Shown in pieces: positions 27,454 through 62,082 of a stretch of 64,000 bases of DNA (positions within the stretch are counted from its first letter, which is position 1; each line of letters begins with the position of its first letter). The position numbers and the translations under genes are program-made. This DNA comes from Hyalangium minutum (GTDB taxonomy: Bacteria > Myxococcota > Myxococcia > Myxococcales > Myxococcaceae). The stretch is from contig NZ_JMCB01000008.1 of NCBI RefSeq assembly GCF_000737315.1, positions 62,001-126,000 on the forward strand. The letters run 5' to 3'. Under the pieces are notes generated by a model, which had not been told where the DNA came from, did not search any database, and saw nothing but the letters and a program-made list of their open reading frames with translations.

Positions 27454-28275
27454 ATGAAGAAATTCCTCGCGTCATTCCTCGCCGTCTTCCTGCTGGCCCT
27501 CCCGGTGGTGGCCCAGGCGGGCACCGTCACCGTCAAGGGCTCGGACACCATGGTCATCCTCGGCCAGCGCTGGGCCGAGGAGTTCATGAAGAAGAACCCC
27601 AGCACCAAGCTTCAGGTGACGGGCGGCGGCTCCGGCACGGGCATCTCCGCGCTCATCAACGGCACCACCGACATCTGCATGTCCAGCCGCCCCATCAAGG
27701 ACGCGGAGTCCGAGAAGCTCCGGACCCGCTTCAACACCACCGGCACGGAGATCGCCGTCGCCAAGGACGGCGTCACCTTCTACGTGAACGAGAAGAACCC
27801 GCTCACCTCCCTGACGCAGGAGCAGCTCAAGGGCATCTACCTGGGCGACATCACCAACTGGAAGGACGTCGGCGGCCCGGACGCGCCCATCGTCGTCTAC
27901 TCCCGCGAGAACTCCTCCGGCACCTACGTCTTCGTGAAGGACAACCTGCTCGGGGGGGAGGACTACACCGCCAGCGCGCAGACGCTGCCGGGCACCGCCG
28001 CGGTGGTGAACGCCGTCTCCAAGGAGAAGAACGGCATTGGCTACGGCGGCGCCGCCTACGCCAAGGGCATCAAGGAGCTGAAGATCAAGGTGGGCAGCGC
28101 CGAGGTGGCTCCCAGCGCCGAGAACATCAAGAGCGGCAAGTACCCGCTCTCGCGCGATCTGTACTTCTACCTGCGCAACAAGCCCACCGGTGAGGCGAAG
28201 GCCTTCATCGACTACGCCCTGTCGGCCGAGGGCCAGCAGCTGGTCACCAAGGTGGGCTACTTCCCTGTGAAGTAG
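27454..28275 (+). CDS. pstS: Phosphate ABC transporter substrate-binding protein
   Basis: VKGSDT, GGGSGTG, SRENSSGT, YPLSRDLY. Confidence 0.95.
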   Translation: MKKFLASFLAVFLLALPVVAQAGTVTVKGSDTMVILGQRWAEEFMKKNPSTKLQVTGGGSGTGISALINGTTDICMSSRPIKDAESEKLRTRFNTTGTEIAVAKDGVTFYVNEKNPLTSLTQEQLKGIYLGDITNWKDVGGPDAPIVVYSRENSSGTYVFVKDNLLGGEDYTASAQTLPGTAAVVNAVSKEKNGIGYGGAAYAKGIKELKIKVGSAEVAPSAENIKSGKYPLSRDLYFYLRNKPTGEAKAFIDYALSAEGQQLVTKVGYFPVK

Positions 28276-28277
28276 GT

Positions 28278-28295
28278 CGTCACACGATTGTCACG
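28278..28295 (+). promoter_or_regulatory. PHO-box-like direct repeat between pstS and pstC
   Basis: CGTCACA-cgat-TGTCACG, 11-bp period. Confidence 0.65.
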
Positions 28296-28311
28296 CGAGG
28301 CGCTGAGTCAG

Positions 28312-29322
28312 ATGGATAGAGAAGCCGCCATGCAGCAGGGTCTCGCGGAAACCATGGTCGTGCCGCGGCTGTCTCCGGCGGCGCGGCGACGGCAGCTCCG
28401 GGAGAAGGCCATCGCCGGCCTCATCACGGTGATGGCTTTCACCGGCATTGCCGCGCTGGTGCTCATCATCGTCTTCATCGCGAAGGAGGCGCTGGGGCTC
28501 TTCCTGGATGCCCACGCCCGCGAGGAGGCGAGCCTCGCCAAGATGTTCACGGCCCAGCCCACCCGGCCGGGCAAGCCGCTGGCCTACCTCTGGCAACCGG
28601 TGTCCAACGTGCCGAAGGTGAGCATGATCCCGCTCTTCGTCGGCACGCTGAAGACGACGCTCGTGTCCATGCTGGTGGCGGTGCCGGTGGGCGTGGCGGC
28701 CGCGCTGTTCGCCGCGGAGTTCGCGCCCCGGCGGCTGCGCGAGCTGCTCAAGCCCGTCATCGAGCTGCTGGCGGGCATCCCGTCCGTGGTGCTCGGCTTC
28801 TTCGCGCTGATGGTGCTGGCCTCCTTCCTCCAGGACACCTTTGGCTTCACCTACCGGCTCAACGCCGTGGTCGCGGGCCTGGGGCTGGCGCTGGCCATCG
28901 TGCCCGTCATCTTCACCGTGTCCGAGGACGCACTGACTGCGGTGCCTCGCAGCTACCGGGAGGCCTCGCTGGCGCTGGGGGCCACGCCGTGGGAGACCGC
29001 CTGGAAGGTCGTCCTTCCCGCGGCGGCCCCGGGCATCCTCGCCGCGTGCGTGCTGGGCTTCGGCCGGGCCATCGGTGAGACGATGATCGTCCTGATGGCC
29101 TCGGGTAACGCCGCCGTCGTCTCGGCCAACCTGAGTGACTCGGTGCGCTCGCTGTCGGCGACGATCGCCGCGGAGATGGGCGAGGTGGTGGTGGGCAGCC
29201 CTCACTACTCACTGCTCTTCTTCATCGGCGTGGAGCTGTTCATCTTCACCTTCATCCTGAACATGCTGGCGTCCGCCTGGACGAAGCGCGTCCTCAAGAA
29301 GCTCACGGGAGGTGCCGCGTGA
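28312..29322 (+). CDS. pstC: Phosphate ABC transporter permease PstC
   Basis: ELLAGIPSVV, SEDALTAVP, FGRAIGETM. Start chosen at ATG 28312. Confidence 0.95.
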   Translation: MDREAAMQQGLAETMVVPRLSPAARRRQLREKAIAGLITVMAFTGIAALVLIIVFIAKEALGLFLDAHAREEASLAKMFTAQPTRPGKPLAYLWQPVSNVPKVSMIPLFVGTLKTTLVSMLVAVPVGVAAALFAAEFAPRRLRELLKPVIELLAGIPSVVLGFFALMVLASFLQDTFGFTYRLNAVVAGLGLALAIVPVIFTVSEDALTAVPRSYREASLALGATPWETAWKVVLPAAAPGILAACVLGFGRAIGETMIVLMASGNAAVVSANLSDSVRSLSATIAAEMGEVVVGSPHYSLLFFIGVELFIFTFILNMLASAWTKRVLKKLTGGAA

Positions 29323-30230
29323 AGTACGGCACACGCCGGACATTGGGCGGCGCCCTGACGTCTCTGACGGGGCTGGCCGCGCTCCTCATCGTGGGGATGC
29401 TCGCGGTCATCCTCTGGGACGTAGTCCGAGGCGGCATCGGCCACGTCACCTGGCAGTTCCTCTCCGAGCCTCCCTCGGACGGCATGATGGGCGGCGGCAT
29501 CTTCCCCGCCCTCTATGGCACGGCGGCGCTGACGCTGCTGATGACGCTGGCGGTGATGCCGATGGGCGTACTCACCGCCGTCTATCTGCATGAGTACGCC
29601 CCGCCCGACTCGCAGCTGGCGCGATGGGTCCGGGTGGCCGTCGCCAACTTGGCGGGCGTCCCCTCCATCGTCTTCGGCCTCTTCGGGCTGGGATTCTTCA
29701 TTCACTTCGTCGGCGGCAGCCTGGATCGAGCGCTCGGATATCAGGAGCTGCACTGGGGCCAGCCCGGCATCCTCTGGGCCTCCCTCACGCTGGCGGTGCT
29801 GACGCTGCCGGTGGTCATCGTCGCCACGGAGGAGGCCCTGCGCGCCGTTCCCTTGGATCACCGCACGGCGAGCCTCGCGCTGGGAGCCACCCAGTCCCAG
29901 ACGCTGATTCGGGTGGTGCTGCCGGGCGCGCTTCCGGGCATCCTGACGGGCGCGGTGCTCGCTGTGTCCCGCGGAGCCGGCGAGGTGGCGCCCATCCTCT
30001 TTACCGGCGCGGCCTACTTCCTGCCGGAGCTTCCCTCGTCGCTGAGCTCGCAGTTCATGCACTTGGGCTACCACACGTACGTGCTCGCCACGCAGTCGCC
30101 GGACGTGGAGGCCACCCGTCCCCTCCTCTACGCCACGGTGCTGGTGCTGCTGATGCTCACCTTCGCCCTCAACCTCATCGCGGTTGTCATCCGGACTCGG
30201 ACTCGCCGGAAGGCCGCGAACGCCCACTGA
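29319..30230 (+). CDS. pstA: Phosphate ABC transporter permease PstA
   Basis: [32 protein letters not shown]. Confidence 0.95.
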
Positions 30231-30240
30231 GACGCCGTCC

Positions 30241-31017
30241 ATGACCTTCCAGCCGCCCAGCCCGCGCATCAAGATGGAGGCGCGGGAGCTCACCCTTCGC
30301 TACGGCACCAAGGTGGCCATCAACAAGGTGAGCATCGCCATTCCCGAGCGTCAGGTGACGGCGCTCATCGGCCCCTCCGGGTGCGGGAAGTCCACCTTCC
30401 TGCGCTCGCTCAACCGGATGAACGATCTCATCACCAGTTCGAACCACACCGGCACCATCCTGTTGGACGGCGCGAGCATCCACGACTCCCACATGGACGT
30501 GGTGGATCTGCGGCGCCGCGTGGGCATGGTGTTCCAGAAGTCCAACCCGTTCCCCAAGTCCATCTTCGAGAACGTGGCCTACGGCCTGCGGGTGGGCGGG
30601 ATGAAGGACCGGGCGGAGCTCAGCACGCGCGTGGAGAAGTCCCTGCGCAGTGCGGCGCTCTGGGACGAGGTGAAGGACCGGCTGGACGAGAGTGCCCTGG
30701 GCCTGTCCGGCGGCCAGCAGCAGCGCCTGTGCATCGCCCGCGCCCTGGCGGTGGAGCCCGAGGTGCTGCTCATGGACGAGCCCGCGAGCGCCCTGGACCC
30801 GATCGCCACGGCGAAGATCGAGGAACTCATCCACGAGCTGAAGGCGACCTATACAATCGCGATCGTCACCCACAACATGCAGCAGGCGGCGCGGGTGAGC
30901 GATCGGACGGCTTTCTTCTACATGGGCGAGTTGGTGGAGTGCGGTCCCACGGAGCAGATCTTCACGAACCCCCGTGAGAAGCGCACCGAGGACTACGTCA
31001 CCGGGAAGTTCGGGTAG
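30241..31017 (+). CDS. pstB: Phosphate ABC transporter ATPase PstB
   Basis: [46 protein letters not shown]. Confidence 0.97.
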
Positions 31018-31030
31018 GAGCGAGGGGCGG

Positions 31031-31720
31031 ATGCCATCGATACATACCGACAAGGCTTTCGAGCAGGACCTGCGCGACCTGCGCGAGCGGCTGCTGGCCA
31101 TGGGCGCCAAGGTGGAGACGCTCATCGCCAACAGCGTGCGCGCGCTCACGGACAGGGACTCGGCACTGGCCGAGAACGTCATCAAGTCCGACAAGGACGT
31201 GAACCGCCTGGAGGTGGAGATTGACGATCTCTGCCGCCGCATCCTGGCGCTGCGGCAGCCCGCCGCGAGCGACCTGCGGCTCATCACCACGGCGCTGAAG
31301 ATCGTCACGGACCTGGAGCGCATTGGAGACCTGGCGGTGAACATCGCCGAGCGCTCCATTGACCTGAGCCAGGTGCCGCCGCTGGCGCCCTACATCGACA
31401 CGCCGCGGCTGGCCGAGCAGGCGCAGCAGCAGGTGAAAAAGGCGCTGGACTCCTTCGTGTCCAATGACGTGGTGAAGGCCGAAGAGGTGCTCAAGGGAGA
31501 CGATCTCCTGGATGCCCTCTTCCTGAAGATCTTCAACGAGCTCCTCGCGTACATGATGGAGGACTCGAAGAACATCCGCCGAGCCACGGCGCTGATGTTC
31601 ATCGCCAAGCACCTGGAGCGCATCGGCGACCACGCGATGAACGTGGCGGAGATGGTCATCTACATGGTGCGCGGCAAGGACATCCGCCACCCGCAGAGCC
31701 GGAACATTCCGCAGGAGTAG
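31031..31720 (+). CDS. phoU: Phosphate signalling protein PhoU
   Basis: QPAASDLR, DLERIGD, KHLERIGDH. Confidence 0.96.
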   Translation: MPSIHTDKAFEQDLRDLRERLLAMGAKVETLIANSVRALTDRDSALAENVIKSDKDVNRLEVEIDDLCRRILALRQPAASDLRLITTALKIVTDLERIGDLAVNIAERSIDLSQVPPLAPYIDTPRLAEQAQQQVKKALDSFVSNDVVKAEEVLKGDDLLDALFLKIFNELLAYMMEDSKNIRRATALMFIAKHLERIGDHAMNVAEMVIYMVRGKDIRHPQSRNIPQE

Positions 31721-34742: not shown

Positions 34743-35010
34743 GCCAAGATGAATGAGGGGCAGCATTGAGTCCGAAACGCTGGAGAGTGTCTCCTGAGGT
34801 GGCTGGGGAGTTGGGCAAAAACACTCTCATGGATTCGTCGGTTCATCCGCCGCGTGTGTCACACCTTCACTGTCGCTTTGAGGGATGGCTCGGTGATGAT
34901 CTACTCCAAACGTTCCCGTGTTTTCTGGCCTCCGCCTTCCTTGCGGAGGAGCTAAAAAAACACGGGGCTTGTAGGGATTAAGGAGGCCCTCTTCAGGAAC
35001 GGATGTGGCC

Positions 35011-35661
35011 ATGAGTTCCCGCACTTGCAGCGTTCTGCTGCTACTGCTCTCCGCCTGCGCTACGACAGAGCCTCAGCAGCGCAAGCCGAAGCAGCACAGA
35101 CAGGTGGCCATTCCCTGGGCTCCCCTCGTCGCACCGAAGCCCGTTGCACCCGTTCTTCCGTCGCCCGGCTTGGCTCCGCCCATGACCGTCATGGTGGACC
35201 CTGGTGCACAGATGCAACAAGAACCGGATGCGAACCCGGCGCCGGAGAGGTCCAGATCGAACAGGGATCCGCCCGCCCCGGTGGCTCCGGAACCCCGTCC
35301 TGAGTGCATCCCCCACATCAAGCCGCACCTTGGCGGAGATCCCCTGCACAATCAGTGCGCCGACAACGTTCCGCAGAACGGTGTTCCCGGCTTTGATGCG
35401 CTCGTCAATGGTAAGCATTTCGACGCACTGCAAATCCGCGCGGGCGTTCTGTGGGAGGTCAAGACCGATAACTTCGACACGTACGCGGTCGCCCTTCAGG
35501 AGATTGTGATCGAGAAACAGGTGCTGGAATTGCAGCGCGAGCGCGATCTCGCACGCGCTTGTGGGTATGCCTTCGTAGTAGGCGTTCGTAGCGACGCGCA
35601 CCGGAAAGCTCTGCGCGACGCAGACCCCTCCCTCAACATCGTCGTCATGGACTGGTGCTGA
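35011..35661 (+). CDS. Lipoprotein with C-terminal PD-(D/E)XK nuclease-like domain (DUF6310-like), putative toxin
   Basis: Lipobox LLLLLSA-C, Pro-rich linker, GKHFDAL...LWEVKT (D...ExK). Confidence 0.72.
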   Translation: MSSRTCSVLLLLLSACATTEPQQRKPKQHRQVAIPWAPLVAPKPVAPVLPSPGLAPPMTVMVDPGAQMQQEPDANPAPERSRSNRDPPAPVAPEPRPECIPHIKPHLGGDPLHNQCADNVPQNGVPGFDALVNGKHFDALQIRAGVLWEVKTDNFDTYAVALQEIVIEKQVLELQRERDLARACGYAFVVGVRSDAHRKALRDADPSLNIVVMDWC

Positions 35662-35662
35662 A

Positions 35663-36421
35663 ATGGCCGCCTCGCCAGACTCCTTCCTTCTTGTCGTCTA
35701 TGCGCCTGCGCTCAGCAGCGATGGCAGCCGCACCTTGGCCGTTATTCGTGGAATGGAACGCGCGCTTCCCGGCTTGCACCTGTCGTGGACGATTTCTGAC
35801 GAGGGTCGGTTCATCCCAGCACCGCAGCGCGATGCGTGGGGCACGGCCAAGACGACCGATGGAAGATTTCCGCTGCTCTGCAATGGCGATGAGGGTCACT
35901 TCGTGACGATCTCTCGCAGGGAAACACCGGCGAGCCAGAATCCTGGTGGGCAGCCACAGTTTGAAGTTCATGCGAAGTGGCCCCTGGACGCTGCGGGTAT
36001 CGCGGCAGCGGGGAAGGTGCTCGAAGAGGTAGCGGAGGGTGCACGCGCGCTGTGGGGGCATGCCACGCCGAAGCGCGCGGCGGGGGACATCGCGGAGCAG
36101 ACGAGCCCCACGCTGGCGGGCTCGCCAAGGCCACCCCGGGGCCTGCCAGCGCTCAAGCTCCCAGAGAAAATCCGCTCGCCTGAGATTCCGCATCGCCTCG
36201 GGTGGCTCAACTACTGGTCAGCCGCCACTGCACAAGCCATCGCGTTCCCGGACCCTGCTCGCGACGCCGAGTTGCTCTCTAGGGCGCAGAGCACGGCGAC
36301 AGGCGGGTGGGTTGTGAAGCTCACGGATGCGCCGCTCGATCTCGATAACCCCGCCCATCTGGACGCGCTGAAGCGGGCCTACGAGCGCTTCCCGGAGATC
36401 GGTGGACGTTCAACGCCCTGA
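35663..36421 (+). CDS. Putative immunity protein (DUF5953-like)
   Basis: Starts 1 bp after the toxin stop; no signal peptide; WGHATP, LGWLNYWS, GGWVVKLTDAPLDL and YERFPEIGGR motifs recalled for this myxobacterial family. Confidence 0.68.
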   Translation: MAASPDSFLLVVYAPALSSDGSRTLAVIRGMERALPGLHLSWTISDEGRFIPAPQRDAWGTAKTTDGRFPLLCNGDEGHFVTISRRETPASQNPGGQPQFEVHAKWPLDAAGIAAAGKVLEEVAEGARALWGHATPKRAAGDIAEQTSPTLAGSPRPPRGLPALKLPEKIRSPEIPHRLGWLNYWSAATAQAIAFPDPARDAELLSRAQSTATGGWVVKLTDAPLDLDNPAHLDALKRAYERFPEIGGRSTP

Positions 36422-36480: not shown

Positions 36481-36529
36481 GAAGGGGCTGGAACCTCCGA
36501 GGGATTTCCTCAGGGATTCCAGCCCCTTC
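36481..36529 (-). terminator. Intrinsic terminator of the tRNA-Arg
   Basis: 13-bp perfect stem GAAGGGGCTGGAA/TTCCAGCCCCTTC with further internal pairing, followed by GCTTTT on the minus strand. A second hairpin lies at 36433-36480. Confidence 0.75.
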
Positions 36530-36535
36530 CACCAG

Positions 36536-36609
<74 letters not shown>

Positions 36610-61969: not shown

Positions 61970-62082
61970 ATTTCCTCCTGAGATTGACAACTCCCGCACC
62001 AGACGGCCTGGTGAGTAGAACCGCCGTGGCTGGGCGGGGGGCGGAACGTGGTGATGGGGCACGCGAGGACAACTGGCCTTCG

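Follow-up and report, generated by a model that had tools for sequence, protein, structure and literature searches.

The toxins of SitA families 1/2, 3, 4, 5, 6, and 7 of myxobacteria are lipoproteins delivered by TraAB outer-membrane exchange. The families have been described with a large family-specific escort domain of about 375 aa (PMC8546572). SitA is found in Myxococcaceae and Archangiaceae, and outer-membrane exchange moves outer-membrane lipoproteins efficiently (PMC5562445). SitA4 and SitA6 are AHH nucleases, SitA6 is DUF2380, and SitA7 is described just as a non-modular 'predicted DNase' from Myxococcus fulvus. Two effector–immunity pairs also serve for comparison. TseT–TsiT (PA3907–PA3908) belongs to the H2 type VI secretion system (H2-T6SS) of Pseudomonas aeruginosa, and TseT is listed as a PD-(D/E)xK, Tox-REase-5 DNase (PMC9990079). 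TseV–TsiV combines VRR-Nuc effectors with DUF3396 (PF11876) immunity proteins, and in the TseV3–TsiV3 model the immunity beta-sheet binds the nuclease helix alpha2 (PMC9635880). Here we analyse a two-gene cassette in a 64,000-nucleotide stretch of Hyalangium minutum (the window; positions 62,001 to 126,000 of contig NZ_JMCB01000008.1). Gene 1 encodes a predicted lipoprotein ending in a DUF6310 domain, and gene 2 encodes a DUF5953 protein (coordinates in Table 1). Neither family is mentioned in the literature that we searched.

The products of gene 1 and gene 2 very probably form a toxin–immunity pair, as a sequence-only reading of the window had proposed. That proposal is strongly supported by the match of both folds to the TseT–TsiT chains, the conserved candidate catalytic triad, the near-constant linkage of the two genes, and the use of the same warhead elsewhere. 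On balance, we favour a two-gene polymorphic toxin–immunity cassette, with outer-membrane exchange as the most likely delivery. The pair resembles TseT–TsiT and TseV–TsiV as toxin plus antidote and SitA–SitI in architecture. It is not filed under Tox-REase-5, Imm52, or SitA, because the sequence tests for the first two failed and a SitA-type escort domain is lacking.

The C-terminal part of gene 1 matches Pfam DUF6310 (PF19829) with 195.4 bits and E = 3.9e-58 over aa 94–216 (profile positions 4–126 of 126; gathering threshold, 27 bits), and gene 2 matches DUF5953 (PF19378) with 407.9 bits and E = 1.8e-122 over aa 20–251 (gathering threshold, 25 bits). The sequence-only reading had named both families correctly. 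The D...ExK motif to which it had pointed is also present, as FD138AL...WE149VK151T. In an alignment of 69 homologues, residues C99, P101, G108, H113, C116, G127, K135, D138, L147, W148, K151, T152, E177, A181, and C184 are invariant, and E149 and C216 are at least 90% conserved. Residues D138, E149, and K151 are the candidate catalytic residues.

In the AlphaFold2 (AF2) model of gene 1, the predicted local distance difference test score (pLDDT) exceeds 90 over aa 95–216. The modelled elements follow the order helix (H111–118), three strands (E128–132; E135–141, carrying D138; and E146–150, carrying E149, with K151 just after), long helix (H160–183), and strand (E187–192). In this model, the order of elements, with D138 on the second strand and E149 on the third, is the PD-(D/E)xK arrangement. 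The fold comparison suggested with the sequence-only reading lands on PD-(D/E)xK effector chains. The top two Foldseek matches in the PDB are 9oz0_B (E = 4.8e-3, probability 1.00) and 7dym_A (E = 2.3e-2, probability 0.99), which are the ~170-residue effector chains of the P. aeruginosa T6SS PA3907–PA3908 complex. Weaker matches include arenavirus cap-snatching endonucleases, XisH, and MUS81. We regard PD-(D/E)xK nuclease chemistry as likely, with the fold predicted at high confidence and the activity deduced from it. The toxin would cut DNA or RNA.

Gene 2 encodes neither a signal peptide nor a lipobox, and in the predicted fold its product begins with a beta-strand, in agreement with the cytoplasmic location read beforehand. 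The AF2 model has a predicted template-modelling score (pTM) of 0.81. Foldseek matches it with probability 1.00 to 7drg (PA0821) and 4rho (BPSL2088) at 1e-7, to 9oz0_A at 4e-6, and to 7dym_B at 4e-5. PA0821 belongs to the TsiV family of immunity proteins, and TsiT and TsiV both serve as structural search models for TsiV3 (PMC9635880). The chains 9oz0_A and 7dym_B are the ~235-residue partner chains of the TseT–TsiT complex. As modelled, gene 2 has the fold common to TsiT and TsiV. That two independently modelled products of adjacent genes match both chains of one effector–immunity crystal complex is the strongest single evidence.

Profile searches of PDB sequences with both family alignments are non-significant, so the TseT–TsiT relationship is visible by fold comparison only. 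The Tox-REase-5 (PF15648) hidden Markov model gives no match at E ≤ 1 in the window protein or the 69 homologues, and Tox-REase-9 matches 4 of the 69 weakly (E = 0.2). Among 48 DUF5953 members, no Pfam match besides DUF5953, Imm52 included, suggests an immunity family. One DUF5953 homologue (P0230) carries the UniRef name 'Immunity protein 52 domain-containing', and DUF5953 and 4rho have a weak local motif in common, TDAP..DNP.H (E = 0.36). No named family in NCBIfam is matched by the short, long, extracellular contractile injection system (eCIS), or immunity members.

TseT–TsiT is the best structural match for the window proteins chain by chain, and it likewise consists of a PD-(D/E)xK nuclease with an immunity gene immediately downstream; DUF6310 is also found on PAAR-like (DUF4280) proteins. 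However, sequence identity is 11–13%, and the window pair has no Pfam match to Tox-REase-5 or Imm52. In addition, TseT is delivered by a T6SS spike, whereas gene 1 encodes a Sec/Lol-type lipoprotein with no T6SS gene nearby. For TseV–TsiV, the likeness is that PA0821 (7drg) is the top structural match of gene 2. The most variable toxin positions cluster at residues 159–169, at the start of helix alpha2; these residues and the variable N-terminal half of the immunity protein map to elements that touch in the TseV3–TsiV3 model. Unlike gene 2, TseV–TsiV immunity proteins belong to another Pfam family and are larger (~330 aa), and their partner nuclease is VRR-Nuc, not DUF6310.

Relatives were collected in a scan of one genome per species, which found 150, and the locus analyses cover the best 79 of these 150. 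In 78 of the 79 loci, the gene directly downstream of DUF6310, on the same strand, encodes DUF5953. By this check, which was suggested with the sequence-only reading, frequent lone copies of gene 1 are not seen. In the window, the two genes are separated by 1 base, as had been read (gene 1 TGA, 35659–35661; gene 2 ATG, 35663), and the gap is exactly 1 nt in 70 of 86 related pairs. In the proposed cassette, gene 2 is translationally coupled to gene 1 through this gap. The sole exception among the 79 loci (L014, 6533–7387) has a 285-aa unannotated open reading frame (ORF) without a family match in place of DUF5953. It lies between ~3.4-kb direct repeats; the ORF may serve as another immunity gene, or a tandem array may have been rearranged here.

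Pairwise identities of the toxin domains and the immunity proteins co-vary (r = 0.61 over 86 pairs, reached by 0 of 999 Mantel permutations), though shared inheritance could also give this. The correlation is r = 0.68 for the variable N-terminal 110 aa of the immunity protein and r = 0.38 for its conserved C-terminal part. The co-variation fits a co-evolving interface. In the C-terminal ~100 residues of DUF5953 (gene 2 ~155–252; window 36125–36418), column identity is 0.73–0.89, far above that of the N-terminal half. This conserved part, where the TDAP..DNP.H motif common to 4rho is located, could bind the conserved active-site face, or it might serve a second role.

Three DUF5953 genes were looked up: one adjoins an intact toxin gene, and the other two (L081 and L082) lie beside a frameshift-broken one. 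L081 (3079–4001 of contig JMCB01000003.1, same assembly, GCA_000737315.1) is a second DUF6310–DUF5953 locus of the source genome; the last ~50 toxin codons are in another frame and the immunity gene is intact. In L082 (430–2177 and 3060–4756; Archangium violaceum CP043493.1), the DUF5953 gene adjoins a toxin gene split over three frames. Immunity would be expected to be kept after toxin loss if the toxin arrives from other cells, and the two loci fit protection from incoming toxin. About 2 kb off in L082, a TsiV-family (PF11876) gene and an unannotated 281-aa neighbour possibly form a second nuclease–immunity pair. Two toxin–immunity pairs lie within 12 kb in L036, L050, L061, and L071 (tandem) and in L055 and L074 (opposed), some with extra gene fragments. 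Polymorphic toxin loci show arrays of this kind.

An exhaustive profile search with DUF6310 yields 235 clusters at E ≤ 0.001. In the long proteins, DUF6310 is at the C-terminus, and the N-terminal partners are eCIS_core/DUF4157 (about 14), transglutaminase-core, PAAR-like DUF4280 (2), and CBM_2. Named examples come from Acidobacteriota, Flavobacteriales, and one cyanobacterium. The eCIS_core forms carry the same C-terminal warhead as gene 1, in one case with a DUF5953 gene after it; they differ in having their own N-terminal delivery module, in their phyla (Acidobacteriota and Flavobacteriales), and in not being lipoproteins. In the sense of Zhang et al. 2012, a polymorphic toxin system reportedly has one C-terminal toxin domain, varied N-terminal delivery modules, and an immunity gene immediately downstream. 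Judged by its architecture, DUF6310/DUF5953 is such a module, because the same C-terminal domain occurs on differing N-terminal modules with DUF5953 downstream.

The best 79 lipoprotein-form loci are all from Myxococcaceae or Archangiaceae, and they are multi-copy, with up to 9 of these loci per genome. In myxobacteria, DUF6310 always comes with a lipoprotein signal, in one of three N-terminal modules that all keep the lipobox: the short Pro-rich form of the window; the commonest form, of ~303–324 aa, in which a Cys-rich segment is followed by a ~38-residue hydrophobic stretch that Pro-Glu divides; and a ~335-aa helical form in Archangium. The Cys-rich segment of the ~303-aa forms (alignment columns ~60–150) reads ANLQRAA.LPW..G.C.V.EAS..W....RCF..LD..R.RF.D..G.C.VAS. 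Their hydrophobic stretch could enter a membrane as a hairpin or span it as one transmembrane helix, and between these options the nuclease would end up on opposite sides of the membrane. One cluster of long-form toxins (P0429, at least 90% identity) is labelled Myxococcus fulvus, Stigmatella aurantiaca, and Stigmatella erecta, pointing either to a recent horizontal transfer across genus boundaries or to a strain with the wrong label.

Gene 1 starts at ATG 35011, where the product begins MSSRTCSVLLLLLSAC; full-length homologues have matching N-termini, for example MRFRTCSALLFL..AC. This match makes ATG 35011 preferable to the in-frame GTG 35005. A comparison of window 35011–35184 with the source genome annotation (L080 7520–7999) shows that the annotation begins gene 1 at Met58, 57 codons late, giving a 159-aa product that has lost the lipobox. 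The annotated start is probably mis-called; many database homologues are shortened likewise, to 126–170 aa. Read from ATG 35011, the product carries the lipobox expected from the sequence-only reading, L13-S14-A15-C16; residue +2 is Ala and residue +7 is Gln. Lys(+2) and Ala(+7) are inner-membrane retention signals, and outer-membrane location has been predicted by this rule (PMC5562445). Gene 1 has neither signal, so its product is predicted to be sorted to the outer membrane. The lipobox is recognised in 69 of the 86 pairs, with further cases that the pattern missed, and +2 is never Lys. The lipobox followed by 'ATTEP' is kept in nearly all full-length homologues.

The lipobox is followed by the Pro-rich linker of the sequence-only reading, with 20 Pro in 78 residues (aa 18–95; 26%). 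In the 37 short-form homologues and the window sequence, the 60% consensus after the anchor is TTEP..Q.A.PW.PLV.PKP...V.PAPGL.PP....VDP. Because these 37 short forms conserve the ~45 residues that come directly after the anchor, we infer that the peptide is more than a spacer, and it is a candidate tether or mini-escort, that is, a minimal entry segment.

The parallel with SitA/SitI drawn by the sequence-only reading stands in part. As in SitA/SitI, gene 1 has a lipobox with outer-membrane sorting signals and a C-terminal predicted nuclease, and the immunity gene lies directly downstream in an operon; the loci are multi-copy per genome in Myxococcaceae and Archangiaceae, and SitA4, SitA6, and SitA7 also have a non-modular toxin domain with varying alleles. 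Unlike SitA, gene 1 lacks the large escort domain of about 375 aa and has just a 78-aa Pro-rich region, and its relatives carry ~180-aa modules and reach at most ~340 aa. There is no sitB gene, and the window toxin is neither AHH (SitA4 and SitA6) nor DUF2380 (SitA6). Identity with SitA4 or SitA6 is ruled out, Pfam giving no DUF2380 or AHH nuclease match in the window protein. M. fulvus carries long-form DUF6310 lipoproteins, and the abundant ~303-aa relatives may already be catalogued, for example as SitA7, with which they are compared by description only. To call the locus an undescribed kin-discrimination system, as was done earlier, may overstate the case, since the module belongs, if distantly, to the TseT/TsiT-type class of toxins, which is already known.

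The proposed mechanism is as follows. Gene 1 would yield a prolipoprotein that, after export and lipidation on Cys16, is sorted to the outer membrane. Transfer to TraA-compatible neighbours would be the expected fate of the toxin, as with SitA toxins, because outer-membrane lipoproteins move efficiently in outer-membrane exchange. By analogy with SitA, we give TraAB delivery an even chance, which makes it the most likely route. The nuclease would then reach the recipient cytoplasm, where the C-terminal 123-aa DUF6310 domain would cut with D138, E149, and K151, and it would be harmless solely where the recipient has the matching DUF5953 allele. The gene 2 product would stay cytoplasmic and most likely neutralise the nuclease by 1:1 binding, with its variable N-terminal beta-sheet half contacting the variable first half of toxin helix alpha2, by analogy with TseV3–TsiV3. 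The conserved Pro-rich peptide after the anchor would play the role of the much larger SitA escort domain, a role that in longer paralogues would fall to a hydrophobic hairpin or a helical module. Our proposal that the ~45-aa peptide suffices to carry a TseT-like nuclease from the recipient outer membrane into the cytoplasm, with a hairpin or helical module doing so in paralogues, is tentative and on present evidence somewhat doubtful. Nuclease colicins offer a mechanistic analogy: their translocation domain is intrinsically unstructured and carries short conserved peptides, the nuclease is at the C-terminus, and an immunity protein binds it tightly. The analogy ends there, as colicins are released soluble rather than lipid-anchored and no homology was found.

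The same toxin–immunity pair could also travel by another route than TraAB, as cargo of outer-membrane vesicles or exposed on the cell surface, and act against prey or unrelated competitors, the immunity protein guarding the producer and its siblings alone. The lipobox and the outer-membrane sorting signal suit vesicle cargo equally well, gene 1 has no SitA-type escort domain, and the same warhead is used by other delivery machines. Nevertheless, we consider such a route unlikely. The best 79 loci have the distribution reported for SitA, and the many diverged paralogous pairs per genome, together with immunity genes beside decayed toxins, are what kin-directed exchange predicts, whereas a broad anti-prey nuclease would need no allele-specific diversity of immunity.

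Several points weigh against a toxin–immunity cassette delivered by outer-membrane exchange. A SitA-type escort domain is lacking, although the nuclease would have to cross the recipient inner membrane. The E-values of the toxin in Foldseek are modest, with template-modelling (TM) scores of about 0.47–0.49 on target length, and sequence methods give no family link, as Tox-REase-5 and Imm52 are unmatched in Pfam (E ≤ 1) and the PDB-sequence profile searches are non-significant. The C-terminal half of the immunity protein has a mean identity of about 0.68, which is unusually high for purely allele-specific binding, and co-inheritance by itself might account for the co-variation. In L081, the frameshift may come from an error in the draft assembly rather than from decay of the toxin. 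The four conserved cysteines could mean a disulfide-stabilised domain that acts outside the cytoplasm. Every step is drawn from prediction or comparison.

The cysteines also bear on the possibility that gene 1 is no weapon, being instead an outer-membrane-tethered nutritional or housekeeping nuclease for extracellular or prey DNA, with gene 2 as a cytoplasmic safety inhibitor in the manner of barnase–barstar or NucA–NuiA. C99, C116, C184, and C216 suggest a fit to the oxidising periplasm, and the highly conserved C-terminal half of the immunity protein would suit such an inhibitor. However, the eCIS and PAAR-like forms, whose site of action must be the reducing cytoplasm, also keep C99 and C184 invariant. 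Moreover, eCIS-type and PAAR-like effectors of other phyla carry the domain as their C-terminal cargo, a T6SS effector and the immunity protein of that effector come closest in structure, a safety inhibitor would not outlast a decayed nuclease, and there are many diverged copies per genome. A housekeeping role is thus very unlikely. As an observation on the same residues, the C-x6-H-x6-H-x2-C spacing (C99, H106, H113, and C116), which precedes the nuclease core, is reminiscent of a metal-binding site; C99, H106, H113, C116, C184, and C216 allow a zinc site or disulfides as alternatives.

An intracellular toxin–antitoxin or anti-phage defence pair whose toxin stays in the producer is hardly credible, even though translationally coupled two-gene layouts with a PD-(D/E)xK nuclease are also common in defence systems and the annotated 159-aa product has no signal peptide, since the lipobox N-terminus is kept across three N-terminal architectures, favouring the long start, and PADLOC gave no match, nor did phage or plasmid records. 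A known anti-phage defence system was rejected on the same ground, the PADLOC models giving zero matches at E ≤ 0.1.

Under the toxin–immunity reading, two Pfam families of unknown function acquire testable roles, that of a PD-(D/E)xK toxin warhead for DUF6310 and that of its immunity protein, with TsiT/TsiV fold, for DUF5953. Across phyla, one warhead–immunity module is shared by eCIS (DUF4157) cargo, PAAR-like T6SS effectors, and the lipoproteins of myxobacteria. By analogy with SitA, the cells probably pass the toxin to neighbours and thereby tell kin from non-kin. If delivery by outer-membrane exchange is confirmed, the family would contribute to the 'self-identity barcode' of Myxococcaceae and Archangiaceae further loci that may escape current counts based on SitA. 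With the short form, the passage of a lipid-anchored toxin through the periplasm and the inner membrane could be studied in a very compact system, and if the reading of the ~45-aa peptide is true, the peptide would define a minimal entry signal for SitA-type toxins. A practical point for annotation is that the late annotated start hides the lipoprotein signal of gene 1.

Third-position GC content (GC3) is 0.71 in gene 1 and 0.72 in gene 2, compared with 0.82–0.93 in the neighbouring genes (whole-window GC, 0.686), in keeping with the earlier description of less GC-rich DNA with atypical codons, consistent with acquisition. The CorC and ClC flanks of the window cassette are shared by 0 of the 79 related loci. 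The low GC3 and the unshared flanking genes fit an acquired or mobile cassette. A search for an att-like duplication of the tRNA-Arg end around the cassette gave only short chance repeats, and tblastn with the immunity protein against phage and plasmid records gave zero matches and so no direct sign of carriage by a sequenced mobile element. No T6SS, Rhs, PAAR, integrase, or sitB-like gene is found near the cassette.

Table 1 Features of the cassette and its surroundings (positions in the window).
Feature	Position	Strand	Description
pstS/pstC/pstA/pstB/phoU phosphate-transport operon	~27454-31720		Upstream of the cassette
Hairpin (inverted repeat I2)	34915..34966	+	In the spacer from the CNNM/CorC gene to gene 1
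Gene 1	35011-35661	+	216-aa lipoprotein with DUF6310; ORF 35005/35011 to 35661
Type II (lipoprotein) signal peptide	35011..35058	+	MSSRTCSVLLLLLSA/C; lipobox LSAC, lipidated residue Cys16
Pro-rich region	35059..35286	+	Predicted disordered, pLDDT 53-65
DUF6310 domain	35287..35661	+	aa 93-216 and stop codon; predicted PD-(D/E)xK warhead
Gene 2	35663-36421	+	DUF5953, 252 aa, cytoplasmic; predicted immunity protein with TsiT/TsiV fold
Hairpin (inverted repeat I1)	36481..36529	.	22-nt arms; between gene 2 and the convergent tRNA gene
tRNA-Arg (CCG)	36535..36609	-	ARAGORN; right neighbour, outside the system, boundary mark

The spacer between the upstream CNNM/CorC gene and gene 1 is 268 bp long and has a lower GC content (0.556). 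The cassette promoter must lie inside this spacer, in which a search for the sigma-70 consensus gave no match. Hairpin I2 is probably the terminator of the CNNM/CorC gene, and hairpin I1 is likely a bidirectional terminator that closes the cassette. A 71-aa ORF (34766–34981) was dropped as a third gene; it has a TTG start, lies inside the lower-GC spacer, and has nothing that supports gene status. The other upstream genes encode a metallophosphoesterase, a response regulator, and the CNNM/CorC transporter, and the convergent tRNA-Arg(CCG) gene downstream is followed by genes for a ClC channel and a P-type ATPase. The pst/phoU operon upstream of the cassette looks like ordinary housekeeping context.

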